Shown one piece after another: positions 3,006 to 57,800 of a stretch of DNA of 64,000 bases. Source of the stretch: Convolutriloba macropyga (lineage: Eukaryota). The stretch's first letter is position 1, and the number at the start of each line of letters is the position of its first letter. Made by a program: the position numbers and the translations under genes. The stretch lies in contig NC_134475.1 in the NCBI RefSeq assembly GCF_964194025.1, positions 15,066,001 to 15,130,000 on the forward strand. Direction: 5' to 3'. Below the pieces are notes generated by a model. That model searched no databases and had not been told where the DNA came from. It saw only the letters and a program-made list of their open reading frames with translations.

Positions 3006-3609
3006 CCCGGGTCGAGGTTTGCCCAAAAAATAATGTAAGATTAGCGGTGAATAGCGATGAAAATTTTTTTTCACCGCAAAGCGCCCGCATCTTTTAGCGT
3101 TCAATGCGGTGAATTTTTGCGAGTTTAAGCGGTGAAATTTTTTTTTCACCGCATTCTGCGGTTTTCTTACAAAAAAGAAACGGCCGTCCAGGGGTTCGAA
3201 CCTCTCACCTCGTTCATTTCAAAAACGTCTTAGTCCACTGCGCCATCTGTCACTTACTTTAAAGATATTTCTTGTGAATAAAAGATAAGCGTTGAAATTA
3301 GCGCGGTGAATATTTGTAAGATTTGCTATTTTAGCGGGGAAAATTTTTTTCACCGCATTCTGCTAGTAGGAGTGAAATTTTTTTTTCATCGCATTCTGCT
3401 GTTAGCGCTGAAAAATTTTTTTCACCGCATTCTGCTGGTAGCGGCGAAAAATTTTCTTTCAGCGCTTAAGCGATGAAATAAAATTTTTACGGCTCAAAAG
3501 TTTTTTTCACTGCATTCATCGCACTGAACGCAAATCTTACACTTTTACTCAAATTCATCGCAAATTTTACATCTTTTAACGATTTTTAGCGGTGACACCT
3601 CGACCCGGG
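3006..3609. mobile_element. MITE with CCC...GGG ends (CMC/EnSpm-like)
   Basis: 13-bp TIR CCCGGGTCGAGGT/ACCTCGACCCGGG, TSD TC, and many internal GCGGTGAA..TTCACCGC palindromic repeats. Confidence 0.88.
3171..3250 (-). ncRNA. tRNA-derived Pol III-like unit inside the MITE
   Basis: Minus strand has A box TGGCGCAGTGG, B box GGTTCGAACCC, then TTTTTT. No intact anticodon or acceptor arms. Confidence 0.6.
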
Positions 3610-6012: not shown

Positions 6013-8676
6013 GTTAGTATACTAGACACTTCCTTTTCATCTGGCGGAATATATCCATCGTCGCATTAAAGCTATCCAAGCCCATATCTGTTCTGAAAAC
6101 CGCTAGTTTGTAAAAACAAAAAATAAAAAAAATCGTTTACAGGGATAAGAAATATAATCTGCTTTCATCCTGTGGCTTAGTAAGTTAAAAATTTTGATCT
6201 TCGTTCGTACAGAATAGTTGCTAAGTATAGTCAACCGCTCAAGAGGCAGTTCAACTTCGTTCATTAAGTTTTTGAAAAAAATCACAGTAACTCACATTGA
6301 AAATACTTACTGAGTGGAAATATGAGTTTACTGCTCATTAGTCTAAGATTATGGTCCTATTTAGTTACCTTCCATAGCAAAATATTTTTGTTGTAATAGG
6401 TCGAAATTTTTTGCCATATTTTTTTGATTCTTGAGAGTTCCTATGGCGACTAAAAATTATAATCTAACACATTTACTTAGAATATCAAAGAGTGTTCTAT
6501 TCAAAGAAGACTCCCCTATTTCAAGCAATAGGTTTAAGAGTGCATTGAACCCATGCGATGATGAAAATTACCAAACAATTGCCAGCTTCATCAAAAACTA
6601 TCAAATTTTAAAGCCCTGCAGAGGAATTTAAAACATTCGAAATTATTTGTTCTTTTCCTTGGTGTCTGTTTTCTTCACCCTTATTCTTGTAATCCCACTG
6701 TATTATAGCCTAAAAATTTGATCCTTTTTCATTTTACCGCGCAAAAAATCAACTCCAACATAGTTTCAGCCCCATTTTAGCATTACCATAATTGGAGAAA
6801 TTTAAGTCTCAATCAGTTCTAATTAATCTGATTAATGGAAATTAAAATGTGGATTAAATTACTGCTTGTGAATAGAACATTGCAACACCTCAATCATTTA
6901 TCATTTCACCCCCATTTGATCTGTAAAATAACGGCTCTAAATTGTCGTGAAAATAAGGCAAAAGACTCAATTGTAAAAAGCAAAGTTACAACCATTAGCG
7001 AACTAGTTGTCTCATCTAATCCCCAATAGGGCATTTAAAAGCCATTGAAAAGTGAATCGAGCTCTAGAACAGTTTTTGTTTTTATTATATTTTGAATCAA
7101 CTTGATGACTGCTGATTTTCAGAGAACGTTTTCTAAAAATAAATAAATATTGGCAGTAGATGAGGATGATTTTTATGTATGGAAATTTCTTTCGATAGAT
7201 GACAACAAGGAAGAAACTGACATTCAAATCTGTAGGGCCACTGTCAGTTTCTATTAATTTTGTATTTGAATTGATTCGGGTCTCTTCTGTTAATTTAGTA
7301 TTTCATCTTTGCTCAAGATTTTTAAGTTGACGCACTGCTTCCGGCCTCTCAGAGCTACGTCGAAGCTTCATATCTTAACTCGTTAGAGATTTGATCCCAG
7401 GCGTTAGTTTTTTGATGGGACCCCTAATTGGCAAAACAATTTGTCAATATTTGTACATAAAAGGTGCACAGCATTGCAGCTGACAAACATTTATATATGA
7501 AGTTCATTGAATTTTAGGTGTTAAACATCAGATTAAACTTTGTTCTGATTCGCACAATTATGCCTATTTCAAAATTGGGTTTTCGATTTCAGCTTAGATC
7601 TTTTCAATTGGAAAGTACCAGTTTTTCCGTCTGTCAGAATCAACCATTTTAACACTTTTCTGATTCCGATCAAATTTCAACAAAAAAGAGGTCAGACAGG
7701 GCACGTGTTCTTTTTCGATCAAAGGTATTGAGCAAAAATCCGTTGCTGTCATTACTCTTTGATTTCAAATAAAGGCAAGTTGTTTAATCCGGCACTCCTC
7801 AAGGGCAGTGGTTTTGCGTTATTTGGGTCCTTTAAATTTTAGCTCTGCTTATTGTTCAATTAATTGGTCGCCAAAATAGAGAAAAAAGTTTTTGTGTGAA
7901 ACTGATTTTGGGGTGAATCAATTGCACAGGGTTAATTGTCTGAGGGGCAAAGTTATATCGTTTTAAATAATGGGAGGTTAAATCAATCGGGGTGAAAAGA
8001 AGTAAAACGCTTTTTTTCTAATTCCTCAAAATAAGGTGCATACCAAATTTTCTACGTTAATTTTAAAGTATCCTAAAAGTATATTGATTTTTACTTGTTG
8101 TATATTTGTCTTTTTTCATGATTCGGCAAAGTGAACACTTTTTGCGAGTAAATTTACTCTATTTTGTGAATGTTCTCCGATTGCTCTTAGCAACGTATCA
8201 TTTCGACACAAATCACAGAAATCCCAATTTGCAAGTAACTGCACAAAAGACCTTCGCTACTTTTAAGGAGATCAACTGCAAAATCGATTGATCGACAAGA
8301 TAGACAAGTTAGTTATAATGTGAAACTTTGTTTTTCAATGTCAGATCTTAAGTAACTCTTTAAAGCAGTTCGAGAAATCAGTTGTATGCTATCTCAAACA
8401 TTTGTTGCTATTTTCCATAAAGTCCCGAAATATACGTTTTCGGGCGTGATGTTAAAAAAAGGTTGGACGATTGAAGTTTTAAGTGTTCAGTTCAAATATC
8501 GTGATAATAATTTTAGTATAAAAAATAAAGTTCGCTGTAGAAGCAGTTACAAGCCAATTATTAACAAATTATACGAGGTATTCGCTCACAAGTCCTCATA
8601 ACAGTGATAATATAGAATTTTGGAATATTCACAAATGTCCTTCTTGATGAGTGCAAACTCCAAAATTTGTTTCTAG

Positions 8677-9049
8677 GAAGCTCTTCTACCTGTGTGATCC
8701 TGACAAACTGAAAAAGTACAAAGGATACGACGAATCGGGAAGAGAAGATATTTTACTGAACTCATTTGCGTGCGACCAAGACATGACGCTAGGGTACTCG
8801 CTGACATCGCTGCAAATCGGACGTGGGAATGTCTACATAGCTACTGGTGGACCACGCGCTTTCGGATTGAAAGGGATGATCAAAATTTTTAAGTTCAATG
8901 GCAATGAACAATATGTAAAAGATTCCTTCACGTTCATTGATCCTGTCATTGGGGAGGAATTCAACTCCGGATTTGGGACATCAATTGTGGGGGCTGATTT
9001 GGACGGTGATGAAGTTGATGAACTCGTTGTGGGAGAACCCTACCGTAGC
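8677..9049 (+). CDS. Integrin alpha exon (FG-GAP blades ~4-5, Ca-binding loop)
   Basis: Phase-2 acceptor TTTCTAG|G. Encodes LGYSL...TGGPRA..KG.I.IF and GEEFNSGFGTSIVGADLDGDEVDELVVGEPY. Donor AGC|GTGAGT is phase 0. Confidence 0.92.
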
Positions 9050-10847
9050 GTGAGTAAAAATAGCAGCAAAGTGATCAAAAAGTTACTTTTGTTCAACTCT
9101 CGTTCCGATAACGACTGTTGCGTAATTTACCGATGAATAGCACGAAAATATGAAAAAATGGCAAAACTCTGTTTCAGAATTTGGGTATCTTTTCCGCCAG
9201 TCTTTTCTCGCCACTTTTGATAAATGAAGAGTGGCCAGAAAAAAGTGGAGCAAAAAGAAAGTTTGTTGCGGCGTAAGATATGCAAATGTTATAATCGCAA
9301 CGAATGTTGATTTAAAACTACCACACGATTGTTATCGCCCTCTCGAAGTTATCCAACAGCTGAGCAATGAACGAGAAAATGTAAGAAAACAGAAATTTCG
9401 GAAAAGACATTGATGATAACTGATCAGGAGGGAGGTCATCAGTCAAAAAAAATGTAATGAAAGAAAAAACAGTGACCCAAAAAAATTGTTTTGCCAACAG
9501 GTCATTGAGTGAATGCCTTTGGATACCAAAGAAATCAATTAAACTAAATATGTGAATGAACGGAGTGTCCATGACCAAAATGTTGCAGTGAACTTACAAT
9601 AAAAAACAATTTGCGCCAAATAAGTTTTGTGGCGCATTTCGATTTGTGGCTGAGTCTGAGTGAGTGTGCGTGTGTGTGAGTGAGCGTCTGTGTTTATGTG
9701 AGCGTGCGTACGTGCGTAACAAAACAAAAGAACTCACACAAAAAGAGAAAAATCAAAGTTTAAACAAAATTCCACAGAAACAGAAATTTATTGTTACTCA
9801 TAGTCCAAAAAGTCATTGTTTCTCTTCAAACAGAAACTGAGTGGAAACGGCATATCTTTGTTTACCAATTGCATATACGAAAAAACTAACAAAAAGCAAC
9901 AAACGCAGTGAAATCTTACATCTAATTTTCCTTCAATAGCCATTGCCAAAGAGTTGTGTACTGTAGTCCCCGAAGAACTATGATTGTGCATCATTAGATT
10001 ATTATTTCCAGCAGTTACTCCATACCATGAATCGAATTCTCACGAGAAAAGACAAAAATGCCGGGAAAATAACGAACTAGTGGAAACAGAGTAAGAAGAG
10101 TTTTTATTATTGAGAACTGAATTAATAAATCATCATTTATTTCCTCCAACTGTATCATCTCAGCAAAACAGAATTTCGAAAAACTCTTTTGCAGAAAGAT
10201 TTTGTGAGTGGCTTTCGGATGGTACAACTTATGACTTCCTCTGATGAATTTAAGGGTTGGGTGTCGCAAATTTCAGATTAAAAAGAACAGGCCAACATGT
10301 AGTTTAATCTCTCATTACATGAACTGGTTCAAACAAAAATAACTTTTGAAAAATCTTAAATGGTTTACCGCATAATGTATGCAAATAATCAAAACGCAAG
10401 TTTTATCCGACACTTTAGATTTTCACAGAATGAAAAAACACGGAAATGAAAGTATCAATCAGCAGGAGATCAAATTTTGAAGACAGTTTGCTTATTGAAA
10501 CAATCGAGAGAAGTTTGATTTCCTCCAATTAATTTCCATCTGTCAGCTATTGCTTATTCCACGCCTGATTTAATTGTTCTGGGTTTTTTTTACCTCTCTA
10601 AGTGTTCATTAGAAAAAATGCTATTTATTCTGATTAAAATTCCACGCTGAGCAAAAAGCTATTACCTCATAGTTTTCTTTAATTCAACTTCGTCAGGCGA
10701 TAATCTCCCATATTAAACAATTTTCCTCAAAAAGCTCAGCAAAAAAAAGGTTTAAATTAAAAACAAAAATTCAACTTAAAAGGACTAGCTCATTTTCTCT
10801 CTCCAACAGCTATTAACACATACATATACCCACAAAGTCAAAAACAC

Positions 10848-14600: not shown

Positions 14601-16650
14601 ATTTTTGGTATTTGGAGCTAATGGACCCCCTTTCGCTTTAGCCTCCTCAATTACAGTCAAAAGCGGTTTTTATAGCCTGATAATTGTATATGATTACAAC
14701 ACTCTAAATAAATTAAATATAACTTGATGTTAACGGAGTTAATGTAAACTAATCGAAGGTAAGATAAACGTTGAGAGACAAGTTTGAGTAAAGGTAAATT
14801 TACAAATTTACCTTCACTTTTTTCAAAGTTTTCCAGTACAAAAAGGCAAATTCTTACTATCATTCTATCCTTTATTATTTGCTCTCAAACCAGAATTGTA
14901 CCAAATATATTTATGCTGCTGGTAACGCAATTTTTGCACTTCCAAGATTTCGAATTTTTGTCTGATAATTTGTATTTTTTGTCTGATAATTTGAATTTTT
15001 GTCTGATAAAATCGTGCATAGCACTTGCCTTTTTAGTATTATAGTTTGCGTTCTCCACGTGCCATCAGTTTTGCTGCGTTACTCACACATTAATATCAAA
15101 ATTATTTTTCAGTTTCATTCGTTCCAGCGTTCCCTACGTGATAGAAACTGATTTAGTTATTGACAAGGTCAGCCTCTCCTCTTTCGTTTGAGATCAATTC
15201 TTACCAATATTGCTAACCATGTTTTTAATAGCCGCACAGCGATAGCTGGGGCTATTATTGGCCTTCAATTGGTTTTTTACAATTCAAAGAATTTGAATTG
15301 TATTGGGGCGCTGTCTTTTTTTAAGATCTGTTCACACATTTTTATGATTTTTGAAGTCGAATTGGAGCAGTGATTTTGGTCACACCGAAACAGGAAATGG
15401 AATGAAAAAGCGAGTGGTTTTGCGGCGTGAAATTTTGTAGCTCAAATTTTAAAGTAGAGTGAGAAAACGGTGTTTGAACAAAAATTCGCTTTATCGGTAG
15501 TGGTTTTCAGTTCACATGCGGCAATTTCACTTTGATTTTTTAGTGTGTTTTTTTTTGTTTCTTGGATCCATTTTTTTTAAAATGGTTTCCCCAATCCATT
15601 CATAGTTCATTCTATACCTAGTTTTTTGTTTGAACCAAATTTCCATTTCTCGCTAAAGGGTTTTTGTTTTCATGCGGCATTTTTGTTTTTTTAATCTGAT
15701 TTTTTTAGAAATGTTTTTTCCAATTCACTCATAGTCAAATTAACCAAAATTTAACATATCAGCCTTAAAAAAAAGACGAATTTTTTTTGTTTGTTTTTTT
15801 TACTTTTTTTTAAGACTGCAGATCTACGAAGCTATTGCGGCTATTGTCTGGCAATCTGCCAGCTATGTTTTTCTGATGTTTTTTCAATCCCTCCTGACCG
15901 ATCTTTTTTCATTTTCCATGTTTCTTATGTCTATCGAGAGCGTTTCGAATGTTTTGTACAAACTGACTTGTGAAAAAAAAGCGTAGATATCTAACTCGAA
16001 AAGTTTGTTTTTTACTATTTAACCCGAGATACCATGAACCCATCTTTTTAGGTATAAATATTTTTAAAAAAAAACATTGTATGCTCAGCTGAATCTATTT
16101 TAACTGAGTATATTTTTTGTAAAAAAAAAATGAAGTGTTCACCTTCTGTGTAATTAAATAACTCTTTTCAGGTCGAGAGGATATCTTGGTTACTGCTCTA
16201 ACGGAAGAAACTTTTGACCGCGAAGGAATGAGTTCAAAGTCTTAATCAGTACTGGCGAGTTAAAACCTTTTTTTAAAACTTTTTCAAAAGAACTTTTTTA
16301 TTGGAGACTAATGCCCCCTTTTGTACAAACAACAACTTTACTTTAGACGAGAATTCAGAAAGGCTTATGATATGTTATAGTAAGCAGGAGGGCGTGATTT
16401 ATTTATCTGTTAGCATAACCGTGTGAGCATGGCCATTAATAAGTGTCCATTAATTCAACGCACCATTATTACTTTTACACTGTAGCATTTCGACACTCGT
16501 TATGTTTCTCAAGGCCTAATGACCTCGTCTTAATCCATTGACATCATGATAATTCGAAAAGCAGAAGTAAAATATTTATTGACTAAGAAAACAGTAATCG
16601 GGGCTATGTTTTCAAGTGATTCAAAGAGTAAATTTTCTGAATCAGTGCAG

Positions 16651-17049
16651 ATTAAGACTCGGAATTCAGGTTATAAATCTTCCGGAAAAGTTTATCTGTA
16701 TAGCGGGTTGCTTCTCAGTTCTATTTACTCAGACCCGTCGAGACAAAATGAGGAACCGAAACCTCTGCAAGAAATATCTTCGGAGCCCCTGCAAGAAAAC
16801 AGTCTGGACGGCAGTTTGTCATTGTTCGGTTTTAGCATCGGCACTTCTCGAGTTGACCTTGACCTAAACGGCTTTGCGGATTTAGTCGTGGGCGACCCGA
16901 GTGGAAACGCCCAAAATGCGCAAGTATTTTACGCTAATACGTACATACGATTTATTCACGCGGACACAATTCCGAAACGAGTTCTCTTTCAAACGTTTGG
17001 GGTTGATCCGGATTGTCCGTACAAAAATTACCAGTTTTGCCAGGAAATA
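16651..17049 (+). CDS. Integrin alpha exon (last propeller blade and start of thigh)
   Basis: Encodes GKVYLYSG...PLQEI...FGFSIGTSRVDLDLNGFADLVVGDP and a thigh C..C pair. Acceptor GTGCAG|ATT is phase 0 (alternative at 16670). Donor ATA|GTTTCC is weak. Confidence 0.85.
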
Positions 17050-19484
17050 GTTTCCTTCTAAATACTAAAATATGTCCAAAATTGGTTAAAATAAGTTATA
17101 TGCAGTCTTGTGGATCCATTTAACATGTACAATATATTTTTTTCTCGAAGCCGATTGTCCTGTTTTTGCACGTACTATTTTTCAATATTTGCAGAAGTAT
17201 TGTTAACGGGCAGAGCAAACTTCTGATATGTTGAATATTCGCTTTTTTGAAAAAATGTTTGTTTTTTAAAACAATTTTTAATCAAAACCCTCAAATCAAA
17301 CAGGTATAATTAAAAGTGATCAAAACAAATATATTGCTCATTAAAGAGCCTACGAGAGCTTTCATTAGTGAAACCGATTGACAGAACAACAAAAACTACT
17401 ACAAAACAGGCAGCTGAGCAAAATCAAAATTGAATGTAGGCAGAATCCGATATTTCACTCAGTTTTTTTTTTCAAAATAAATTCTAATCAAAATATTGGA
17501 AACAGTTTGGTATGATTGAATTCAATTTAATGTATTTAACTAATAGCCATTAGAGGGCCACTTAGACTTTTCCTTTGTGATACTAATTATAAACAATTAT
17601 AGATTGCGCCAAAGCCACAAATTTCGAAAATCAATTCCAGAAATTGCAGCGACTGAGAACTGTAATTAATTAGACAGAATGAAAAAAAGTACGAAAACAG
17701 GCAGAGTTCAAAACCACCCTCGGATTTCTCAAGAGAAGCTAAGTTATTTTAATTTTTTTTTAAAAAAAAATTGGATGTGTAAGAAAAAAACCAAATAAAT
17801 TTGATTAATAAGATTTGATAAATAAGATAATAAGTGGCAGAACAACCAATATTAAAAGAAGACAATTTTAAAATTCTTTTAAATAAGGCGCTTAATTAGA
17901 GATCCAATTAGAACTACCACTAATGATACTGAGTGGTAGAACACAAAAAAATACAATACAGGCAAAATACAATAAATCAGTAATTTTATCTTAAAAATAA
18001 TTAATTTCTTAGTTAAAAAATCTTAAGTTGTTTTTTGAAGGTCTTTAGAAGAATAAATCTCAAGCAAAGAAGATCAGAGCATAGCTTCATTACACATCTG
18101 GCTCTATTAGAAGTCGAGTTCCATGAACCTCAAGCGCCTATGAAACCATATTTCAGGACCTGCAAAAATGTTGGGGGACATGAAAGTCCGATATTGAGAC
18201 GAAGACTTTCGGAGAAAGGTAAGTGATCAAGTTAGTTTTAGGTAACTGATAGCTCAGTAGGCGTTAGTTAGTTAAGCGGATAAATTGAGGAATGTTCCCT
18301 GAAAAAGCCACCGCGGACTAAAAACAAACTGTATTCACAAGCCTTTGCCAATCCGATTCAGATCAGCGCCTGGTTGTCAATGGGACTATGTTTAAAATGG
18401 CTCCCGTGGCCATGGTTCACTAGCTTTTCACCGTGGAAATGTCACCAATGAGCAAACTTTAGTCTATTTGATTGGAAAGTCAAGAAGCCTAATTAAAATT
18501 GAGAGTAGTTGACAAATACTTCTGCTTAGTAGCAATTTTGGCGACTTGTCTAGACTCCAAATGAAGTCTTTTGTAAACCCAATCTTTTTAAAAACTCTTT
18601 TGAGTTTTTTGTTGACCCAAACCCACTTTAATGTTTTGTTAGTAGGCAGCAAAAGCGTATTTATCAGTTTTTTGTGTGCGGTAGCTTGCGATTTTTGCCA
18701 CCCTGTATAACTGAAAGGTGGTTGGTGGTAAATGGGAAAACCCTGTGGTTTCTGATTTTATCATTCATTTCCCTGCACCATTCTGCTCTTCGCATAATTG
18801 TTTTCTAGGGGGAAAATTATCTAGTAAGATATATTGAGTAAAGTGCAGACGACAACCTTAACTTTTATTCAGAGAAATATATATCACAGAGTAGTTTCAC
18901 ATCTGCGATAGCAGAGCTTCAAGATAAAATGTGGTTATACTTTTGCAGCCTGTGTAAATTAGAAGGCGTTTATTGTAGCACTATTAGACGAATTCTGATC
19001 TTTTGCTGGTTTTAGTTTCCATGCCACGAACCGTTTATGATTGTTTCGATATTTTGGAGACAACAAAAATTATATATCTTGATGCGACAGTCATATATGG
19101 TTATGATTGATTTTAATAATTATTTTCGCCTGTTCTTTTTCTCAGTTGAACAATTTTTGTATTGTTTGGGTTATGCTTATTTAATTTTTACTCATTTTTA
19201 GAACCCAAATTGAAACAGTTTTTATACATGCAATTAACCCAGTGCGAAAAAAATAAAGAATTGTTGATATTAAAATAGATTACGACTGAGGGAAAGTATG
19301 GATGTCGTATCCTGGTGGGAAGAGAGAAGATCTTGTTATGATGAGTTCCAAGTTTAAAAATTGGGAAATATCATAACTGTTTTCTTCAAATTGATAACTA
19401 TTTTCCTCGTGCTGAGTATTTCTCAAAATTATATCGTAAAACTTAAGCTAAATAAAATCAAGTAGGAAACATTTTTGAGGACAG

Positions 19485-23499: not shown

Positions 23500-26400
23500 G
23501 TTGATTGCGTAGAGTCTGTGTACATCAAAACAGTTCTGAAAGTTTCTACCTTCGATACGGGTAAAGATTTCGTGAAGATGTCGGCTGCCATCTTGTCAGT
23601 AGGAACTTAATGAATTGAAATAGTCCTATCTTCCGTCTTGTCCCGAATAAAGTGAAATTTTGTCTCAATGTGTTTGCTCCTCTTGTGCATGACTGGGATT
23701 GGCTAAAGTTAATACAACTGTGGTTTTCCACTCAATTGCTATTGGATGTTTCTGTTGGATGCCGAAACCCTCCAGAAATTGTTTCAAATACAATGCTTCT
23801 TGAACTGCTTTTGCCTATGCCCTGATATTCTGCTTCTGATGACGAAAGAGCAACTGTGATCTGCTTCTTGACACCCCAGCTGAGTGCTGCTCCACGTCCG
23901 TTGAGCTTGAAGTAGTAGCCCGTCGTTGATTTTCTGTCGTTCACATCACTAGACCAGTCTGCATTACTTCCCCCACTAAATCATAACTAGCTTTTTTGTG
24001 AAAGTAATTTTTAAACCTTTTGAACTTTGAAGATATCGCAGAAGTCTTTTTCCGCACATCCAGTGTTGATTGGTAGGTGCATTCATGTGTCTGGACAGAA
24101 TGTTGACTGTGAATAGGATATCTGGCTTCGTCTGTTTGGCCAGATACAGAAGTGATCCAACCAAGTTTTTGTAGATCCTCTGGTCCACTTCTTGGTCTCC
24201 GTTCTTTGCTGTCTGAAGTTTCAAATTCAAATTAGCTGGAGTTCTTGAGGGTTTGTATTGATCCATTTGAAACCACTCAAGCATTGTTTCTATGGAGCGT
24301 TCTTGGTCAACTGTGACTTTGCTTCCTTCTTGTCTGATTAGTAGACCCAGAAACCTGTTCAATCTTCCTCTCTCTTCCATGTGAATTGTTGCTTCGAGAG
24401 CCTTTTTGACAGCGGAGATCACTGTCATGCTTCATGATGCCACTATGATGTCGTCAACCCAGACCAAGATGAAAGTGTGACCCTCTTTTGCTTCTCTTGC
24501 GAACAAGCAATGATCATTCCTGCTCCTGATGAACCCCTGTCTCAGTAGGAAGTTTTCCAGTTCCTTATACCAGTTGTTAGCTGCCTGTTTCAAACCATAA
24601 ATTGATTTATTCAGTCGGCATACTAACTACTAACTTTTCCCCATCTGATCCTTGTTTTACAAGCCCCTGTGGCTGTTCCAGATACACTTCTTCTTCTATT
24701 GGTGAGTGCAGGAAAGCCTTCTTGACATCAAACTGGTGCATCACATGGCTCTGCTTCGCTGAAAGTTGAAGAAGAATCCTGAATGTCTCTGGCTTACAGG
24801 TAGGCGCAAAAGTCTCAAAATAGTCCAGTCTTTCCACCTGTTTGAAGCCTTTCGCCACATAGGGTGCTTTGTATTTGTCCACTTGACCACTGGGTCCCAA
24901 TTCTGCTTTGTAGACCCCCCATCTGCCCGGTATGACATCCCTGTCTGTGGGTGGTCTCACTAGGTTCCAAGTCTCGTTGTCTTGGAGTGCCTTGACCTCG
25001 TCCTTCATTTCCCGGTGCCACTGGTCCCAATTATCACTTTGCTTGGCTTCGTAGACTGTTTTGGGTTCCACATAGTCACCCTCAGTCACAACAAGATGGG
25101 TCCTGACTTCTCCAAAAAATTGCTGAACATTCCTGGCTCGTGTCCCTCGTCTGGGCTCTGCCCTGTCCGCTTGCTCCAGTGCCTCTTCAAAGAAGCCAAC
25201 TGTCCTCCGTTTCACTGTTTTCCAGTGACTCCGAGTCTCTGAGACTCCCACTTATTGCAGTAGATTCTTCATCCAGTGCTGCTTCCTCAACATCTGAGGC
25301 ATCTCGTCTCAGTGTCGTTTATTGACTGTTAACGCTCTCTGCGTAACGCCACTCCTCCTTTATTGCAGTAGATTTGCCCTGCTCCTCTTTGCTCCCATCG
25401 TCTTGATGACCATCATCTGGATGCCAGATCCCCAGTTGCTGTGACCCCTCATCTAGTAGGTCGGGCGTCTTTGTGTTCTCTGGGATTGGGCCCACTTCGG
25501 ACTCCTTGATGATCACATCTCGAACTGCCACAACCTTGCGTGTGTTGGGTACGCACACCAGGTATATCCGTTGTCTCCTTCAGTGTAACCCACAAATTTT
25601 CCTTTTAGTGTCTTGGGTTCAAATTTGCTGACATCTCTGTCCCGCTTCCTCAGGAAGACTGTGCAACCAAAAATAGATAGCTTACTAATTGAAAGCTCAG
25701 GTTTTATACCTCGCATCAGCTCTGCAGGGCAATTTTTTTCTCCTTGTCTCACAACCAAGTTCCTGGTCCTTGTTGCATGGATAATTGCTGCTCCCCACAT
25801 CATCTTGGGAAGACCCGAGTCAATGAGCAAGCATCTTGCCATCTCCAGCAGTGTCCTGTTGTTGCACCTCTCAGCTAACCCATTCTGTTGTGGCGTCTCT
25901 GATATGGTATTCTCCTGTAGAATGCCTGCATCTAAACAGTACATCTTGAACTGCTCTTGGAGCAACTCCTTCGCATTGTCTTATCTCAGCTTCTTGGGTG
26001 TCCCCACACTAAAAACAAACTTCCTCAGGCTGGCCAGTGCTTCACTCTTTGCCTTAAGCAAGTCCACAAACACAAACTTCATGTTCTGGTCTGCAAACAC
26101 AAGACAGAACCGGAACCCTGACAGTGACTCTACTCTGAAAGCTCCCATCACGTCTGTGAATACTCTCTCCGGCTTCTCTTCTGCTTGGGTCTTTGCCACT
26201 CTTGGTAATGGAGTCTTTGTGATCATGCCAATGCGCACACATTACATACATCATCGAGTTCCCCCGCTGTCTTTGGTGCATTCCTGACCACATCCGCTTG
26301 ATTCAATTGACCCAATCGTCTGTGCCACTCCCTTGCACTGTCAAGTTTCACGCTGTTGGAACTCATCTTGAATTCTAAAACGCTGCAGCGTAAGTAAAAC

Positions 26401-28427: not shown

Positions 28428-29635
28428 ATTAAGAAATGGGGAAAATATGACGGACAATTGCACTTTCCTTAAAAATGAAATGAAAAACCTTGAACAATTT
28501 TGTCTGTTCAGCTCTATTTTTTCACAAGTGGCAAAGATTAAGAAATGTGGAAAATATGACGGACACTTGAACTTTAGAGTGAATTTGAACTAATTCTTCC
28601 TACTGTTGCTTCTGTCCATACACGCTTTTGTAACCGGAAAAATTGTAACCGGGAGAACCCAATTGCTTTTCAAGAAATATAGCGGCTTGATTTGAACAGA
28701 AACTGTGATCACAACCATGGCTTAGTTAACATCAAGTTCTTGACATTCATATTTGACCCATTAAATAGTCTAAAATGTATAGTCATAAGCGTGCAAAGCA
28801 TGGCAATTTCTCGAAAGAAATATAGCGATAGTCATGCTGAATTCTATGACAACTCTGGCCAAATCTACCACAACCCATGCGGGTTGCGGAGAGATGTTCA
28901 TAAAACCAAGCACACGTAAAACCAAATCTTGATTATAAAAATGTTCCAAACTTTTTTTGCTATAAAATTACTGACTAATAATGAAAAACAGTGCTTAAAG
29001 AAATTCTTTTTTTCAGTTTTTTCTATTTTGTTTCACCAGTCGCACCAGTTTGATTTAGTGCCTTTTTGTTCTTACTCTATATACACCAGATCTCAAAAGT
29101 TGAGTTGAATTGCGATCATAATTTTATTTCTAACTGCAGACACTGCCTGTCTTTTTGATTGCCTGTGTGTGGCAATATCAACTTTATTTAGCTTAAACCA
29201 CAGTTGAGAGATAGAAGTTTTTTACAATGTCTGAAATCGCCTTTGAACCCTCGAACAGCCAATTTTTCGTGCTTATAAGAACCTGTTTTCTTTATAAAAT
29301 TGAATTTTAGAAAAATGTTGTATAAAACTTGAACGTTTCTGCATTTCACACCACAGATTTAAATATATATTATAAATATATAGCTTTGGTGTTTCCTTAT
29401 GAAATTTTGCTTGATTTATAAAAAAAAGTATTAAGCTCGACCAATAAAAAAATTCCTTGATTTTAACTACTATTAACCTCCACAGTGTACTTAAAATCAA
29501 TAGTTCCATAGTCTTTTCATAGAAGAGGTGGGGGCTGCTCGGGGTTATTACCAGGGAAAGGACTCCAAATTTGGGCTTTTTCGTGTCCGCATATCGCAAG
29601 CTTAGATAAATTCTCAAGTTTCTTGCATATTTCAG

Positions 29636-30009
29636 GGCAGATTGTTGAGTGCAAATTTACTGATGGTAAATACTTCTCTTCGGCCAAAATCACAATAAAC
29701 CTCTCGGTTGAAAAATTACGCAAAGGATTGAAGCGCCAGAATGATTTCACACTGGAGTACTCCCTCAATTGGGCTAACCGAAAACTGGTCGGCGAAGAGA
29801 CTTCTGCGACCAAAATTATTTTGGACTACGACGCAGATCTAGAGGTTTACGGCACAGCGCCTTCGGTACTGGAGAACACGCCTTTCAATGCAAACATCTC
29901 TCCGAAACTAACCTTTGTGATCAATTTGGAGAATATTGGTCCGTCAGAAATTGCAGAAACGGACGTGAAATTTTATGCTCCCTCCGATACTAAAAAATTT
30001 TCCGTCGAG
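29636..30009 (+). CDS. Integrin alpha exon (calf-1/calf-2)
   Basis: Acceptor TTTCAG|GG is phase 1. Motifs DADLEVYGTAPS and INLENIGPSEI are typical of calf-2. Donor GAG|GTAGGA is phase 0. Confidence 0.88.
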
Positions 30010-30239
30010 GTAGGAAAAATATTAGAGCTGTCCATTGTATAGTATTTTTTGCTTTAATTAGTCTGTGTGAGGAAACTAATGCGCTTTTTTCTACACTAAT
30101 AAGGGTTCGCATAGCCCAATAACAGGTGGGACTATTCCTCGCATTTGAAGCATAGCATCATAACTGTATAAATAAGTCATGTAGGGATTTTTATATTTAA
30201 CTGATGAAAAACTGCCAAATTTTACTTCACTGTGGTTAT

Positions 30240-30506
30240 CCTAGTCAACCTTAAGCGCCTATCTTAAGATCTTGTCATAATCTTGCAAGAATCTTGTACC
30301 AAATTGTTTAATATTGCAGGAGTATAATCACTGGCCGATACACATGCTGCGAAAATTTTTTGAATATATAATGGGAAAACGCTTGGCGCAATTTTTAAAC
30401 AAAAGTTCATTCCTGGGCATTGCCAGGCTATATTGAGCGATCGCTTTAGATTTGAGAGGAATGCATATGGAGGACTCACCCAATGCTAAAACACGTAGTT
30501 TGCCTT
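30240..30506. mobile_element. Older, truncated left end of a related CCTAGTC.. element
   Basis: CCTAGTCAACCTTAAGCGCCTATCTT...TCTTGCAAGAATCTTGTACCAAATTG resembles the start of the element at 30507. Confidence 0.6.
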
Positions 30507-30974
30507 CCCTAGTCGAGCTTACACGCATATCTTGTAAGATCTTGTAAGAATCTTGCAAGAGTCTTGTACCAAATTGTATAATCTTACAAGAGTCTTGCAA
30601 GATTCTTACAAGATCTTACAAGATAGGCGTTAAATAAAAGACTCTTATAAGATAGGCACGTAATCTTGTAAGAGTCTTACAAGATAGGCGATTTCTCTTG
30701 CAAGAATCTTACAAGATAGGCGTTTTCCCTTGTAAGATTCTTGCAAGATAGGTGTTTTCTCTTGCAAGAGTCTTACAAGATAGGCGTTTTTCCTACAAGA
30801 ATCTTACAAGATAGGCGTTTTCTCTTGTAAGATTCTTGCAAGATAGTCGTTTTTAATCGCCGGGGACCTAAAAAACATGGTTTTAAATAAAATATCAAAC
30901 TTCTGTCGGAAAATTATCTCAAGTCTGTTTAAAAAAACTGACTTTGTTGAGATTTTTCCAGTATGTTCTGGGTG

Positions 30975-31032
30975 TGTTCCCTCCTCCTTATCTCAACCGG
31001 GCTGGGGACCGGCTACGGCGGAGTTACAAACA
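30975..31032 (-). ncRNA. Twister ribozyme (P1-type), copy 1
   Basis: The minus strand reads U^AACUCCGCCGUAGCCGGUCCCCAGCCCGGUUGAGAUAAGGAGGAGGG. Pairings: P2 CUCC/GGAG, P4 CCGG/CCGG, pseudoknots GC/GC and CCC/GGG, with conserved UAA and GAGGG. Predicted cut between 31026 and 31025. Confidence 0.88.
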
Positions 31033-31300
31033 AACAACTATAGGAGATTTTGAGCAGAGCATTCGGTAAAAAAAACCGGGCTCAAGCTCCATCTCCAAAA
31101 ATAAAACAATTTAAAATAAAACATTTAAAATAAAACGAATTAAAATAAAACAAATTAAAATAAAACAAATTAAAATAAAACAAATTAATTAAAATAACAG
31201 CAGAAATTTAAACAATATAGCATACCATTGTCGGAAAATTATCTCAAGTCTGTTTGAAAAAACTGACTTTGTTGAGATTTTTCCAGTATGTTCTGGGTGG

Positions 31301-31358
31301 GTTCCCCTCCTCCTTATCTCAACCGGGCTGGGGACCGGCTACGGCGGAGTTACAAACA
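31301..31358 (-). ncRNA. Twister ribozyme (P1-type), copy 2
   Basis: Core identical to copy 1. Predicted cut between 31352 and 31351. Confidence 0.88.
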
Positions 31359-33739
31359 AATAACTATAGGAAATTTTGAGCAGAGCATTCGGTAAAAAAA
31401 ACCGGGCTCAAGCTCCATCTCCAAAAATAAAACAATTTAAAATAAAACATTTAAAATAAAACGAATTAAAATAAAACAAATTAAAATAAAACAAATTAAT
31501 TAAAATAACAGCAGAAATTTAAACAATATAGCATACCATTGTCGGAAAATTATCTCAAGTCTGTTTAAAAAAACTAACTTTGTTGAGATTTTTCCAGTAA
31601 GTTAGCTTACAAGAATATAAGTAAGCTTAATATAGTAAGTTAATATAAGTTTAGCTTAAAGAAGAAAATCCAGGCCTTAATTTTCTCGCCGGAAATTAAT
31701 TTTGCTCTCGGGCCTGAACAATAAGTTTCATATCAACTTCACCGTAAATAAGGTATTTGAATTACTCTACTCGAGAAATATTTTCAAATAATTGTTTCAG
31801 TGGTCTTCTCAAATATTAATAGCAACCATATTTGTTCACAGATCTTAACACTCGGGTGCAGAACTAAAAAATTCCATTGGAACCATAATTTTAACATAAT
31901 TTTGCCTTTTAATTCACAGCTTTTAGTTAAACAATCAAAACAAAGGTTTTAAGTACGTTTTTATTCCGTTTCTCTTAGTTGCTTAATTTTTTCGATGTGT
32001 TCAGAAAACGCCTATCTTGTAAGATCTTGCAAGACATCTTGCAAGATAGCCAAGTTTCACAAGAAGGCTTACACACGCTTATCTTGTAAGATCTTACAAG
32101 ATGTCTTACAAGATAAGCGTGCAGATGCAAGATCTTACAAGATAAGCGTGTGGTTGCAAGATCTTACAAGATAAGCGCTTTTTGCAAGATTCTTACAAGA
32201 TCTTACAAGATAGGCGTGTAAGCTCGACTAGGGTTATTTCAACCTTGTCATTGGGAGCCTTAAAAGCCGATATAGATTGAATAAAATCTTAAACTGACAT
32301 AAAATCTTAAACTGACGTAAAACCATTCAATCTAGTTACGGAGGGGGGGGGGGGGTTGTCAACACCACAAATTGCATATAGCCACCATATGACAATGCGA
32401 CAAGGGTTCGATTTTGACATGTCATGTGACGGATTTGAGGGCAAGCGAATGGCAAAATCTAGTTTATTGCGTGCATCTTGTAAGCCAGGATTTGTTAAAA
32501 GACCAGCATTTTAAATTATTGAACAAACACCTCCGCATTTCATACTTTTTACTGGACCCTACATAATAACTGTTCTCTATGGTTTAGTGTTATTTAGTAC
32601 CACAATCTGTGACCAATCAAATATAATGATTTTATTATATTCATAACGAACTAAAACATGCAAGAGTAATGAATGAGATCTTTTCCGTTTTGCCCCCCCC
32701 CCCCCCCACCCCCTCCCACGCGCCAGCTTAGTTGGTGCATATTCTTATTTGCACCCCCATTTTTACATAATGGTCTACTATGTAATGGCACGTGCTCTGT
32801 AACTATGGGGGTGCATAACTGTATAACATACAAGGTACAGACAGAAAAGATCCCATGAAGGAAATGGAAATTCTTTGTGATTGCGGTGTGTCAACATCCA
32901 ACGGGTGTTTATTAAGTAATCTATCGTTGTTGCAAAAATTAACTAAACATCCACAATTTAACGAGAGATCTTTCACGTGGAGATTTTGTGACACCTGCTG
33001 CTAATATAATAAAGTAAACAAAACAATTAATAACATAGCATCAACTTGAATTGACAACATAGCATTGAATTGACGTTCTCTGCAACTTGAAACAGTATTG
33101 TAATTAAAATCAAAGCATCTGAGTCCACACATCTCCAGAAAAAACACCAAAAATTAAACCTAAACAGACTCAAGTATATATAAAGACATAGACATTTTTG
33201 ACGAACTTGTGCGAAGTCTTTGAATGCGTTTTGCGTGTATACTTAGATGCCGGATAGCCGGATAACTTAGATGCCGGATAGCACAGAAGTTTTTATGTGT
33301 AGTTTTTTTTCCTTATTAGTATATGATAGTCTTGATGAACGATCTTGCTTTAGAGCGCATCAAATCATGGTCACTTATCACTAGAGCAAGGACGCCTAGT
33401 CTCAAAATAAACAAATTTTTTTAATTCTTCCATTTAAGCAAATTTTTTCTAATTCTTCTTCCATTTGTCTCGTCCACTTCTCCTCTTCCTTTTTCAATTT
33501 TAGTTTAAACAGCCGATATTTTGCGTAGAAATTGGTTGTTGGTTGTGCCCCTCTTTGGGTGAGATAAACACATATTCCCATTGGAAGTGTGCCCTCACAT
33601 TGAGTGACCATCCATATGAATAATACCCATGTGCAATTGGGTAGGTTAGTAATATGAATTGATTGAGCCTCTGTTGACCCTCACAATTGTGTCTTCATTT
33701 TTCTATTACATTACTGACTAAATCTCATAGCTGTGTTTC

Positions 33740-53968: not shown

Positions 53969-56849
53969 AGCCTCATTGTTAAATTTTGAAAATTAAAACT
54001 GACATGATAATTGGCCAGAGCAAAACTGCTTTTAAGTTAGGGAAATAAAAGTTTTTGTTGCGTAGACTTTACACTGAAAAATTATAGCTGCGAAGACAAA
54101 AAAATAGACTCGATATTCTAACGACCCGAGCGCATCAACTTTTTTTACTTAATTGTCAACCAAATGAAGAGACAATAAAAAATTAGTTGTTTGAGTTCAA
54201 AGATTTCGTTACACACCCAATAAAGTAATTTAATTACATAATTCCATGTGTCATTGGAGAGCTCGCAAAATTTACCGTTAATAAGACTACGAGAAGAAAA
54301 ACAAACAACAAAACAAGCAAAAACACAAAACATTTTTACGGCAAAAACTTAATAGATAAGTTTAAAAGCACCTGGTTACAACGCCAAATTACAATCAGAC
54401 AAAACCAGAACTACATAAATTTACTTTTTCTTTATTATAAAGCAAATGCTACCTTGCTTAAATGAGACTAGAAAACAAGTCGACAAAGAGAAAAAAACAT
54501 GAGGCGAACTCAAAAATAAATTAATAATTTCTATTCCAAGTAACTTCAAAGGTCCTAAAAGAGCAGTATCTTCCACAACAAAATTCTGGATAAATTTTCT
54601 AAAAGGTCACTAGAAAATCAGTATGGCCTGATTTTGGAAAGATCAAGCGATCGAAACGGACTAAAGGTGAAGAATAAATGAAAATATTTTAAAAAATTTG
54701 AGAATAAACAAACTATTCAGGTAATTAAAATCACTAGATATTATCTGGATACTATTTTTTATTTCAATTGTTATTTACAATATATCAGTTATTATTATAC
54801 TGAAAGGTTAAATAGGTTCACCTTAGCTTCTTTTGAATATCATTGGGTTTGTTATTAAGCGAATTTGCCTAAAGGAGACAAAGAGAACAAATGTTGACCA
54901 CTCACAAATTGTTCATGAAGACGCACATTGTGCAACAAACAACAAAACAGTCACGACATAATATCATTAAACACGTCAAAGTTCGATTTAAATGATTAAG
55001 ATGGAAGATTTCAATGATGACAATAATTTACAAGTTGTCAAAAAGAACATCAAAAAATGATATTTAAACAAATATATTTGAAAGCAACTATCAGGAACAT
55101 TAGGACATTTTGTTTTATACTGACTGCATTGAACAGGCTAGTCCAATGCTCAATCAGGAATTCATCAGAACTTTCAGCATTCCTAAGTGTCGAAGCCGTT
55201 AAAACGAGAAATTTTTCTCTGAAATTTCCATCTATGATTAATTGATCTCCAGCTATAAGCCAATGGGATCTGTCGATTTTAGGATAATAAAATAAGAAGT
55301 CAAAAAGAAACCACGATTTGAAAACTGATCTGAATTTTTTTAAGATAAATTATGAAAAATCGTGGCATCGATGTCATAAATTCAGTAGTTAGAAGAAAAA
55401 ACCGCTAACCAACTTAATTTTTGTTGCAGGAAAAAAATGGTCCTGTCATGATTGAGCCTTACAGGTACACAAAAAAAAGAAAACTTATTTTTGAAATCTT
55501 AACAGCCATTAGCTGTCCACTCAAAGCGCTACATAGGCTTAGTTCAAGCTTATAAGGAAGTGAGTCTGTTTCAATTTTAGTCAACGAGACTGCCATAGGA
55601 CTACAAAAATTTCAAAACCTCAAGAAGAAAATCAAATTTCACTAACTTCAACAACCAAATCTCACAGTCGAAGCCAAAAAGTCTTGAGCGATTCCTTCAA
55701 ATCCAATATTTGTTCAATGGGTATCATTTGAGTTTATATGGGGTTTGTCCTTAACGGCGCCTTGATATGAAAAGTGACTTTAAGTCTCTAAGTCTTTAAG
55801 TGACTAGAAATTTTTTTTAAAAAAAACAAAAAATAAAGGTTTTTAAAAAACAGCTCTCAATTAGAATTCAATTTTTTTTATAGTGAAATTCACTCTGAGA
55901 TCATAAAGAGCCTCTTTATTGCCTTTTGTCTTTTTTGGAACACAAAATTGTTTGATTTTGAAGCGTAAAATGTTATTTTGAATATATGTTTTAATAGAAA
56001 AAATCTCACAATGGACGAAAATTTCCATAAAATTGAACAAAAACATGCCAAATATCACGTGTCCACGCAGAGCATTAAACCTCGAAAGCTCCTCGAAAAG
56101 AGCGAAAATCAGAAAACAATTTTCTATTCTACTCTGGACGAGATTTTTAAAGATGCCACTCAAATTTCTCTACGATGAGTATATCGATCTGCCAAAATTG
56201 ACTGAACAAAAAAACGCATTTGAGTATGTAATTCCTCCCAAACCCCCCCCCCCCCACCACAAGTGGGGTCAGAACAATTATAACACTTAAATGGAGTTTT
56301 CTAAACATAAAAAGTCCAAAAATTGTCAAACTGTTGAACTTTTCTGCGTGTTTTTTTTTTCATTGTCGATAATATTATATATTGGAAATTATGTTAGTTT
56401 AGTCTTATGAAACATTTTGTTTTCTCAACATACTAAAAGATTGTCCAATTTAATGCCAAACCAATCATCAGGAAACATTTTAAAACGGTTTATTGCTCTC
56501 GATTTTATTTCCTTTCAGATAATCGTCTGCTCAAAAATTGAAAGTTAAACGCCCTGCTTTTTAAAATTCCTCATTTAATTTCATTCGATTTTCATTACGT
56601 AAAAGTAAACAACTTTAATTTTTCAATATACAAAAAACACCTGGACAAAATTCAAAATTTTTGAAGCTCATATATAGCTCATGACACTATATACCATTTA
56701 TAGAGAAAACCGTCACTTGGTTGGTGTTCATGAAAAACCAACGTCAAAATTGCATCTCATATGAAACAAAACGTTTTCATGTTTTCTACTTTGAGCCAAA
56801 TTCATTTCTAGTTTAATCACATAAAATTTCGAAAAAAAATTATTTAATT

Positions 56850-57800
56850 ATGTTTCGATTAAAAGAACTTTTGCTCTCATTATCCATAATAGCTGTGACA
56901 GATCAGACCTACACTCGCGTTGGTTATTTTACCCCCATGGCAAATATAAGAATGGCACACAAATTCTTTATCACCCAACTAAGTCAAATTCCAATGACAC
57001 GATGTATTCAGAGATGTATGCAGCATTACCAATGTTTAACCTTTGCTTACGGGTACAGAACATGTCTGCTTTATTCTTCGGATCCACGGACTGAATTAGA
57101 AGAACCGTCTTTAATGAGAAAGTTCAAAATTCATCTTAACTTTTTCACGTTTCACAGAACTGATCAACGTTTGTGCTACGTGAATAAAATACCTGTTAAC
57201 TCGGGTCACGATATTCAAAAATGCGCGATTGGGGGCAAAATTCAGGCCTCAAAATGCTCAGAATGGGGTGACTGGCAAAGTATTTACGGCGGGGCGAAAG
57301 ATGAAAGATTTGTGGGTAAAATCAACATTACAAAGTCACTGGAACGGTTTTTAAATTGTACTCGACCTCTGAATAACGGCGTGCAATGCGTCGGTAAACG
57401 CTATGAGAGAAAAGAAAAATTTGTGCATTTGATTCGAAAAGCAGTTCTCGAAAAAAAGGCCAACGAATTTTGTCGGTCAAATGGTCTAGAATTGTTCACT
57501 GGTTTGTACATGATTCCTGAAGGGTCTTGGCCAGGGGGTGACCATAATTACTGGACGGGTTTTATAAAGTTATACGGGAAAATTATGGATAGGGATGCAA
57601 AGCAGTGGGTGACTTACGATTGCCCAGATATGTGGGGTCATAACCAGCCAGATGCTGTTTTCGGACCAGAGCCGTACGTTTATGTTACCGACGGAAGGTT
57701 AACTGATAGAGCGGGAATGTTGATAGCTTATGTGGCCTGTGATCGATGGGAATGGGTTCAACATTTTGACTGTGACAAACCATATTTTTCTCTAATTTAG
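56850..57800 (+). CDS. Secreted PAN/apple + TSP1-like + C-type lectin-like protein (316 aa, single coding exon)
   Basis: Signal peptide (LLLSLSIIAVT); CIQRCMQHYQCLTFAY..RTCLLYS (PAN); CSEWGDW...R..NC.RP.NNG.QC.G (TSP1-like); ANEFC...YWTG...WGHNQPD....EPYV...VAC (CTLD-like). Confidence 0.85.
   Translation: MFRLKELLLSLSIIAVTDQTYTRVGYFTPMANIRMAHKFFITQLSQIPMTRCIQRCMQHYQCLTFAYGYRTCLLYSSDPRTELEEPSLMRKFKIHLNFFTFHRTDQRLCYVNKIPVNSGHDIQKCAIGGKIQASKCSEWGDWQSIYGGAKDERFVGKINITKSLERFLNCTRPLNNGVQCVGKRYERKEKFVHLIRKAVLEKKANEFCRSNGLELFTGLYMIPEGSWPGGDHNYWTGFIKLYGKIMDRDAKQWVTYDCPDMWGHNQPDAVFGPEPYVYVTDGRLTDRAGMLIAYVACDRWEWVQHFDCDKPYFSLI

Follow-up and report, generated by a model that had tools for sequence, protein, structure and literature searches.

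A tandem array of twister ribozyme motifs in the genome of Convolutriloba macropyga is probably the product of internal duplication of a conserved ~220-nt twister cassette, together with an AT-rich minisatellite spacer, inside a non-autonomous cut-and-paste transposon. The array lies on the minus strand of a 64,000-nucleotide stretch (NCBI RefSeq assembly GCF_964194025.1, contig NC_134475.1, positions 15,066,001 to 15,130,000; hereafter the window, in whose own coordinates positions are given), where an earlier note, made from the letters alone, had read it as a candidate retrozyme, that is, as tandem ribozyme units spread by way of a reverse-transcribed RNA circle. Alignment with other copies in the same genome indicates that the element and its array have spread as DNA, in near-identical copies with both ends in common, and that internal deletions, duplications and slippage of the minisatellite account for the differing unit numbers of these copies. 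The array may resemble a retrozyme in its RNA output, not in its mode of spread.

Structure of the array and its enclosing element

Homology with sister copies ends exactly at 30505-30507 and at 32233, delimiting an element with the following parts:

30507-32233, no strand: complete non-autonomous DNA transposon of 1,727 bp that holds the array (limits of sister-copy homology)
30505-30506, second copy 32234-32235, no strand: 2-bp target-site duplication TT, read from the flanks
30507-30558, plus strand: left arm of the terminal inverted repeat (TIR), CCCTAGTCGAGC..., 52 nt, 98% complementary to 32182-32233
30559-30881, no strand: subterminal arm built from 32-bp TCTTGCAAGA-type repeats, some direct and some inverted (period 32)
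30882-31603, minus strand: tandem array of 2.2 units (direct-repeat families and genome search)
31098-31188, second block 31424-31499, no strand: AT-rich 15-nt minisatellite spacer between cassettes (Tandem Repeats Finder, period 15)
31604-32181, no strand: opposite arm, with a unique part and subterminal repeats at 32008-32181 (sister-copy alignment)
32182-32233, minus strand: right arm of the TIR, ...GCTCGACTAGGG, pairing with the left arm

The head-to-tail repeat that the earlier note had described (325 and 311 bp plus a partial unit) is real, and only its limits move, from 30904-31599 to the slightly wider interval listed above. In the direct-repeat analysis the units are spaced 326/325 and 311 nt apart and are 91-99% identical to one another; the array comprises two full units of 326 and 311 nt and a partial one. 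Read along the minus strand, it runs from a partial unit (positions 60-326, in the short form) through the full 326-nt unit to a second partial unit (positions 1-145). The internal minisatellite is present in 6.1 copies in one unit and 5.1 in the other, and the difference between 326 and 311 nt is thus exactly one 15-nt copy. The units are low in GC and hold no reading frame, and no open reading frame follows the twisters within the element.

The arm repeat at 30638-30853 (period 32, 6.8 copies) forms many inverted pairs with 32008-32217, and the last part of the opposite arm (31784-32233) is 99% identical to one sister locus (L061) and 92.5-98.7% identical to two others (L010 and L006). Inverted repeats, a target-site duplication and the recurrence of the same ends in different flanks together mark the element as a non-autonomous TIR transposon.

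All genome searches were made against the window's own 1.18-Gb genome. With the 326-nt unit as query, 116 matches were found among 1,604 candidates, and in about 10 of the loci fetched, homology of 98-99% spans the arm and breaks off precisely at 30505-30507, beyond which the flanks are unrelated. L061, the same element at 99% identity, has lost 690 bp by internal deletion and keeps a single twister, L006 holds three twisters, and in L010 the first twister is truncated; from these alignments, the range of one to three twisters among sister copies that are 98-99% identical reflects internal deletions and duplications. Target-site duplications were read from loci in which both element ends were present, and a 2-bp duplication with variable letters was found in 8/8 complete elements (TT, TA, CA, AG, TA, AA, CT, TC):

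window family: TT in the window, TA in L010, CA in L061
L063, element 225-1962: duplication AG
L068, element 334-2156: duplication TA
L069, element 566-2081: duplication AA
L075, element 499-2236: duplication CT
window 3006-3609: twister-less element of the same transposon group, 604 bp, with ends CCCGGGTCGAGG ... CCTCGACCCGGG, duplication TC

The opposite end of these elements, where it falls inside the locus, reads CCCGGGCCGAGG or similar. The termini of the window group are CCCNNGNCGAG, and the terminal motif is common to the other families that bear the twister cassette. With at most 1 mismatch allowed, the 20-nt terminus was counted 113 times in the genome (control 0), and pairing these termini gives elements of 140-2,819 bp, the 140-bp members consisting of the inverted repeats only, with no twister.

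Twister motifs in both units

At gathering thresholds, Rfam matched nothing in the window. The relevant model, twister-P1 (RF03160; gathering score 67.2 bits; 68 positions), was nonetheless matched twice over its full length (68/68 model positions, with the optional P3 deleted) when the interval 30800-31700 was scanned permissively, and the P1-type fold proposed in the earlier note is therefore recovered in a P3-less form, once in each unit:

31301-31356, minus strand: twister-P1 motif A, predicted cut U31352^A31351 (RF03160, 37.5 bits, E 2.1e-6)
30975-31030, minus strand: twister-P1 motif B, predicted cut U31026^A31025 (RF03160, 38.4 bits, E 1.2e-6)
31026-31351, minus strand: predicted 326-nt monomer, if both twisters cut at their U^A sites

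Rescaled to the whole window, the motif E value is ~1e-4. Scores of 38.4 and 37.5 bits fall well below the gathering score of 67.2, mainly because the optional P3 is deleted; the best canonical P3-less twister of the genome (53.9 bits) and the P3-bearing ones (63 bits) likewise remain below it. The letters on the minus strand read exactly as first written down. Both motifs carry L1 (UAA/GAGGG), P2 (CUCC/GGAG), P4 and the letters for both pseudoknots, such that U^A stands opposite GAGGG, P2 has 4 bp, and the CCC/GC of L4 can pair with GGG (T1) and GC (T2); the single A>C change that had been pointed out in L4 is present too. What did not hold was the description of P2 as covaried, for CUCC/GGAG is the usual animal P2, identical to that of Schistosoma twisters (PMC8501958) and invariant in this genome. 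By the table in the same paper, active Schistosoma twisters have identical letters in P2, L1 and L2. Taken together, these matches support the view that both units carry genuine P3-less twister-P1 motifs, one each, in tandem.

The minimum-free-energy fold recovers P2 and P4 and shifts P1 two nucleotides outward (GUUUGUU/AACACAC). From the two U^A sites it follows, as had been predicted, that two minus-strand cuts would release a 326-nt RNA; its computed fold has -73 kcal/mol and z = -2.67 and leaves ~100 nt of AU-rich spacer unpaired, while the cassette alone reaches z = -3.8.

The cassette across the genome

An exact 30-mer from the twister, TAACTCCGCCGTAGCCGGTCCCCAGCCCGG, occurs 501 times in the genome (control 0). 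The first 30 of its places correspond to 28 distinct loci, of which ~23 (~80%) carry a single twister and the other 5 carry two or three, 225 to 504 nt apart. Aligning these loci defines a cassette of ~220 nt, made up of unit positions ~246-326 (a leader hairpin) and 1-145 (the twister, a small hairpin and a tail hairpin). The mid-unit ends of the array, which the earlier note had taken as a sign of rolling reverse transcription, coincide with the fixed borders of this mostly single-copy cassette. Its further expectation, that the unit would be dispersed with some multimers, is borne out by the 116 unit matches, the 501 30-mers, the triple in L006 and the 6.6 units of L046.

Downstream of the cassette, the arms consist of family-specific 21-43-bp repeats that cannot be aligned between families. 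They lead to a common terminus, ...[GC][TC]TCGNCNNGGG, 380-940 nt past the cut site, with the cassette always on the same strand; the terminus is found in 21/28 loci, or 23/28 when the variant terminus of L064 and L070 is included, where chance would give ~0.02 per locus. Multi-unit arrays recur at several loci, with units of 226-326 nt in 2 to 6.6 copies. The longest (L046:2-1562) has 6.6 units of 236 nt (90% matches) and six twister-P1 matches of 35-52 bits; it runs off the start of the locus and is followed by 31-nt TCTTGCAAGA-type repeats resembling the window's arm. Several of its units read GAC where the pseudoknot letters GCC are expected.

In many twister-bearing elements the left half is filled by ~7 copies of a 174-bp satellite (L062:3-1305, L080:185-1381), and in the elements of L062 and L080 a T-rich microsatellite, (TTGTT)n, stands immediately upstream of the leader hairpin. 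The palindromic subterminal arms of L006, L061, L046 and L068 also gave sub-threshold matches to microRNA precursors (MIR6019, MIR444, mir-297); these are artefacts that arise because the arms can fold into long hairpins.

Cassettes have moved between arms. L086:1390-1610 is 99% identical to the cassette at window 30882-31110 and continues into a different arm of (ACGACGAAAA)n repeats, and in L022, L025 and L026, too, the cassette adjoins a completely different arm. This indicates an exchange of cassettes between elements, with recombination or template switching as the probable route. At its start the window's own arm retains a piece (aaaaacgac) of the arm repeat of that other family, which points to chimeras formed between families of transposons.

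Conservation and flanking hairpins

Regional identity was measured in 15 cassettes chosen by similarity over the whole unit, not by the twister, with the window copy as reference:

16 nt upstream of the cut site: 99%
twister core: 96%
next 22 nt: 97%
leader hairpin: 92%
tail hairpin: 80%
tail end: 70%

A broader alignment, in which the choice of sample predetermines the first 30 nt, is near-invariant from -20 to ~+70 around the cut site, with leader and tail diverged. Contig depth points the same way: taken from four runs that behave like DNA (even depth in unique flanks, contigs of up to 87 kb, total letters close to genome size), the summed depth, which is not a copy number, is ~1e5 on two twister bins, ~1e4 on the tail, ~1e3 on the spacer and 15-55 in unique flanks. 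When runs were searched for RNA-Seq data only, none came up.

On either side of the twister the cassette can form a hairpin:

31043-31097, minus strand: leader hairpin of twister B (GGAGAU...AUCUCC), -24.3 kcal/mol, z = -4.7; the equivalent for twister A is at 31369-31423
30908-30959, minus strand: tail hairpin of twister B (GGAAAA...UUUUCC), z = -4.9; further copies at ~31233-31284 and ~31544-31595

Folded one sequence at a time, most subfamilies keep both hairpins, with differing inner stems. For the tail hairpin, specified by hand, 86.7% of the cells of a 32-sequence alignment are paired, against 23-43% when partners are slid. Changes on both sides of a pair affect 26 cells, a value that was reached by 0/500 shuffles, and pair 27-43, for instance, is CG in 16 copies, UA in 15 and unpaired in none; the copies are related, so these compensatory changes are not independent events. 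When the cassette alignment was folded as a consensus, only the invariant P2 and P4 emerged, and no covariation was found.

Twisters of RTE-like retrotransposons in the same genome

The genome also holds twisters of another kind. In RTE-like long interspersed nuclear elements (LINEs; L031-L036, L042, L047 and L051, all on other contigs), a P3-bearing twister of 92 nt, scoring up to 63 bits, stands ~25 nt upstream of a reading frame for an APE endonuclease and reverse transcriptase, an arrangement that matches Perere-3 of Schistosoma (PMC8501958) and a remark in PMC7761336. The sequence upstream of the LINE twister's cut site varies between copies, and in several LINE copies the opening letters of the twister are partly duplicated, over a short stretch, immediately upstream. 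Copies such as L031 and L051 start at the cut site and continue into the endonuclease and reverse-transcriptase frame, as a 5' twister of an RTE LINE should; the window array does neither. Given that P2, L1 and L2 have the same letters in both and that P3 is replaced by 3 nt in the cassette, the array cassette is probably derived from the LINE twister lineage. The reading frames found near the twisters of L037, L043 and L055 were considered and set aside as low-complexity sequence of no credible family.

Proposed RNA output

If the twisters are active, established twister chemistry implies that a transcript of the twister strand would be cut at U^A to leave a 2',3'-cyclic phosphate and a 5'-OH. 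With a single cassette, the transposon transcript would be split between its two inverted arms; with at least two, unit-length RNA would be released (326 nt in the window), which RtcB could ligate into a circle. What the transposon might gain is a matter of speculation: in autonomous elements the downstream message could be freed, as has been shown for LINEs, or the two inverted arms of a read-through transcript could be separated.

The pattern of conservation suggests that the cassette has been selected as part of the transposon group. A stronger version, which we put forward tentatively and consider somewhat unlikely, is that hairpin, twister and hairpin form a working RNA-processing module under selection throughout a whole cut-and-paste transposon group, and that tandem cassettes yield circularised RNAs of 226-326 nt. 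Were the module real, single cassettes would cut the transcript between the arms, freeing a message or preventing a long hairpin RNA.

Weighing the explanations

Several observations weigh against our preferred account of a conserved cassette duplicated within a DNA transposon, or against a function for it. The motif scores ~29 bits under the Rfam gathering score and ~15 under the canonical P3-less twisters of the genome; L4 reads GUCCCCAGC in place of the highly conserved GUCCCAAGC, the P4-P2 junction is 4 nt over the consensus (an insertion of low posterior probability), and P1 is weak, with two non-standard pairs in the Rfam register, for all of which reasons activity is not assured. The 28-locus sample was picked by an exact twister 30-mer, and the conservation could partly reflect young copies and exchange between elements (L086). 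In the tail hairpin, G.U and A.C occur equally often (11 vs 11, no strand bias), so that the pairing may be of importance in DNA too, not in RNA alone. Lastly, among the paired termini listed none lie more than 3 kb apart, and no autonomous, transposase-bearing element was found.

Much of this would be expected if the 5' fragment of an RTE LINE had been captured once by a DNA transposon and carried along as dead cargo, its twisters inactive or irrelevant and the array a product of satellite-like slippage. Beyond the sub-threshold score, the L4 change, the weak P1 and the absence of a G.U strand bias in the hairpins, such a history would account for the youth of many copies (98-99% identity, so that conservation may be recency), for the disabling changes in array members (GAC for GCC in L046, and scattered point mutations) and for the twister-less members of the group (window 3006-3609 and the 140-bp elements of inverted repeats only). 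We judge it improbable nevertheless: a twister block of ~110 nt is kept at 96-99% across subfamilies whose arms cannot be aligned, while leader and tail fall to 70-85%; double changes preserve the pairing of both leader and tail hairpins; and sister cassette families with the canonical L4 (up to 53.9 bits) have the same leader end.

The reading of the earlier note, a non-LTR (long terminal repeat) retrozyme built on twister, extended here so that a LINE reverse transcriptase rolls the circularised monomers into tandem insertions, one of which landed in a DNA transposon, survives in part. The units are indeed tandem, low in GC, frameless, non-coding and 226-326 nt long, within the 150-450 bp of retrozymes; they carry one ribozyme each, occur at many loci and reach arrays of at least 6.6 units, outward features shared with animal hammerhead retrozymes (PMC7229834), even though the ribozyme class differs and ~80% of loci are single. 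Twister-bearing RTE-type LINEs are present in the genome, and tandem amplification of precisely this cassette recurs in several families. What does not stand is spread through a reverse-transcribed circle. All arrays examined are in phase with the single-copy cassette, in the same place and on the same strand, inside TIR elements that have a 2-bp duplication and whose ends and arms are common to the copies, so the arrays stand within other mobile elements rather than alone. At the loci examined, neither cassette nor arrays are directly surrounded by duplications or LINE-like tails; nearly all copies conserve what lies upstream of the cut site and consequently do not begin at a processed 5' end; and the monomer does not appear to be rod-like. 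A pattern of one constant 3' end and varying 5' ends, as left by target-primed reverse transcription, was also considered, and the apparent 5' truncations in sister copies turned out to be runs of N (L002, L005, L008), a common CT-rich simple repeat (L004, L006, L007) or internal deletions that enter the other arm at different points upstream of the array (L061, L010, L015 and the window). On this evidence a retrotransposed origin is very unlikely. At the three loci where runs of N adjoin the upstream edge of the array, the assembled number of units may be too low.

Equally remote, or slightly more so, is the idea that the cassette is itself a small mobile element, akin to a short interspersed nuclear element or moving as uncleaved RNA or DNA, that has repeatedly targeted these transposons. 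A cassette 99% identical to the window's on a wholly different arm (L086, L022, L025, L026) and sharp borders at ~246 and 138-145 are what it would predict. The cassette's orientation and relative position are constant across all families, though, with no duplications around it; the aaaaacgac remnant in the window's arm fits recombination or template switching between related elements; and leader and tail contain T runs, 7-8 letters long, that would terminate transcription by RNA polymerase III. Internal duplication within a cut-and-paste transposon accordingly remains the explanation we favour.

Genomic neighbourhood of the element

Open reading frames on the plus strand of the window together indicate an integrin-alpha-like host gene:

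8651-9133 and 16534-17058, plus strand: frames with FG-GAP repeats
29512-30039, plus strand: frame like integrin alpha Ig-like domains (feature score high)

The transposon starts 467 bp downstream of the last exon-like frame and is for that reason probably intronic. Its twisters, on the minus strand, are antisense to this gene, so that host read-through would not make the ribozyme strand, and transcription of that strand at this locus would need an antisense or element-borne promoter. Elsewhere in the window, a Copia-type reverse transcriptase (RVT_2, E 5e-26) lies at 24610-25251 on the minus strand, in a GC-richer block at 24-28 kb, and a 327-aa open frame at 56817-57797 on the plus strand has weak PAN-domain matches below Pfam's cut-off.

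Comparison with known systems

To our knowledge, the only experimentally supported role of eukaryotic twisters is the 5' processing of RTE-type LINE transcripts, and hammerheads are the only ribozymes known to make circular RNAs from tandem repeats. Full-text searches of the literature found no report of a twister as the built-in ribozyme of a retrozyme or in eukaryotic TIR DNA transposons, nor of any self-cleaving ribozyme that is a standing component of cut-and-paste transposons in eukaryotes. In a November 2026 paper by the retrozyme laboratory, hammerheads are still the only ribozymes with which retrozymes are described.

Animal non-LTR retrozymes are tandem repeats of 150-450 bp with type I hammerheads and give rise to small circular RNAs (Cervera and de la Pena 2020, PMC7229834). 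The window array is like them in its short, AT-rich, non-coding ribozyme units, in occurring as dimers to multimers and in the predicted unit RNA with 5'-OH and cyclic-phosphate ends; it differs in being based on twister, in that its relatives are mostly single copies, in lying inside TIR transposons and in having a monomer that appears not to be highly self-paired. Twisters at the 5' end of RTE-type LINEs are exemplified by Perere-3 of Schistosoma mansoni (Liu et al. 2021, PMC8501958; de la Pena et al. 2020, PMC7761336). The cassette has the ribozyme class, P2 (CUCC/GGAG) and the L1 and L2 letters in common with these. In the LINE, however, the copy starts at the cut site, what lies upstream is the target site and an APE and reverse-transcriptase frame follows, whereas the window cassette has a conserved leader, 3 nt in place of P3, no following frame and a DNA transposon as its carrier.

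Among DNA transposons, the closest resemblance is to elements of the kind of miniature inverted-repeat transposable elements (MITEs), with inverted ends, subterminal repeats and internal arrays of varying copy number (here the 174-bp satellite and the microsatellites). The bivalve 'pearl' or DTC84-type elements, with internal tandem repeats, and the subterminal repeats of CACTA-type elements are examples, and no self-cleaving ribozyme is known from them. CACTA-like elements have complex subterminal repeats; the termini of the window group differ from theirs in beginning CCCNNG. A Helentron/HINE assignment, suggested by the 174-bp satellites, was rejected, given that Helentron-type elements insert between T and T without duplication and the window group has variable 2-bp duplications. 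Target-site duplications are reported as 2-4 bp in CMC elements and as 2 bp, AT within AATT, in ISL2EU (PMC4482050). The short duplication of the window group is like those of PHIS (ISL2EU) and CMC elements, and ISL2EU itself was set aside, its duplication being AT-specific and that of the window group variable. Catalytic RNA as a built-in part of a DNA transposon does have a precedent in the IStrons, in which a group I intron is fused to a bacterial insertion sequence (PMC4227781), although these are bacterial, their ribozyme is self-splicing and their benefit, a harmless insertion, is understood.

Significance

One genome thus holds twisters of the LINE type and, separately, at least hundreds of P3-less cassettes in DNA transposons. 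If the cassette is active, it would offer a second natural setting, unlike the first, for studying the function of twisters, and it would show a ribozyme and its circular-RNA output spreading without reverse transcription, that is, a ribozyme-made circular RNA propagated by transposition of DNA. If it is inactive, it would be a clean case of LINE-derived cargo hitch-hiking on MITE-like elements.

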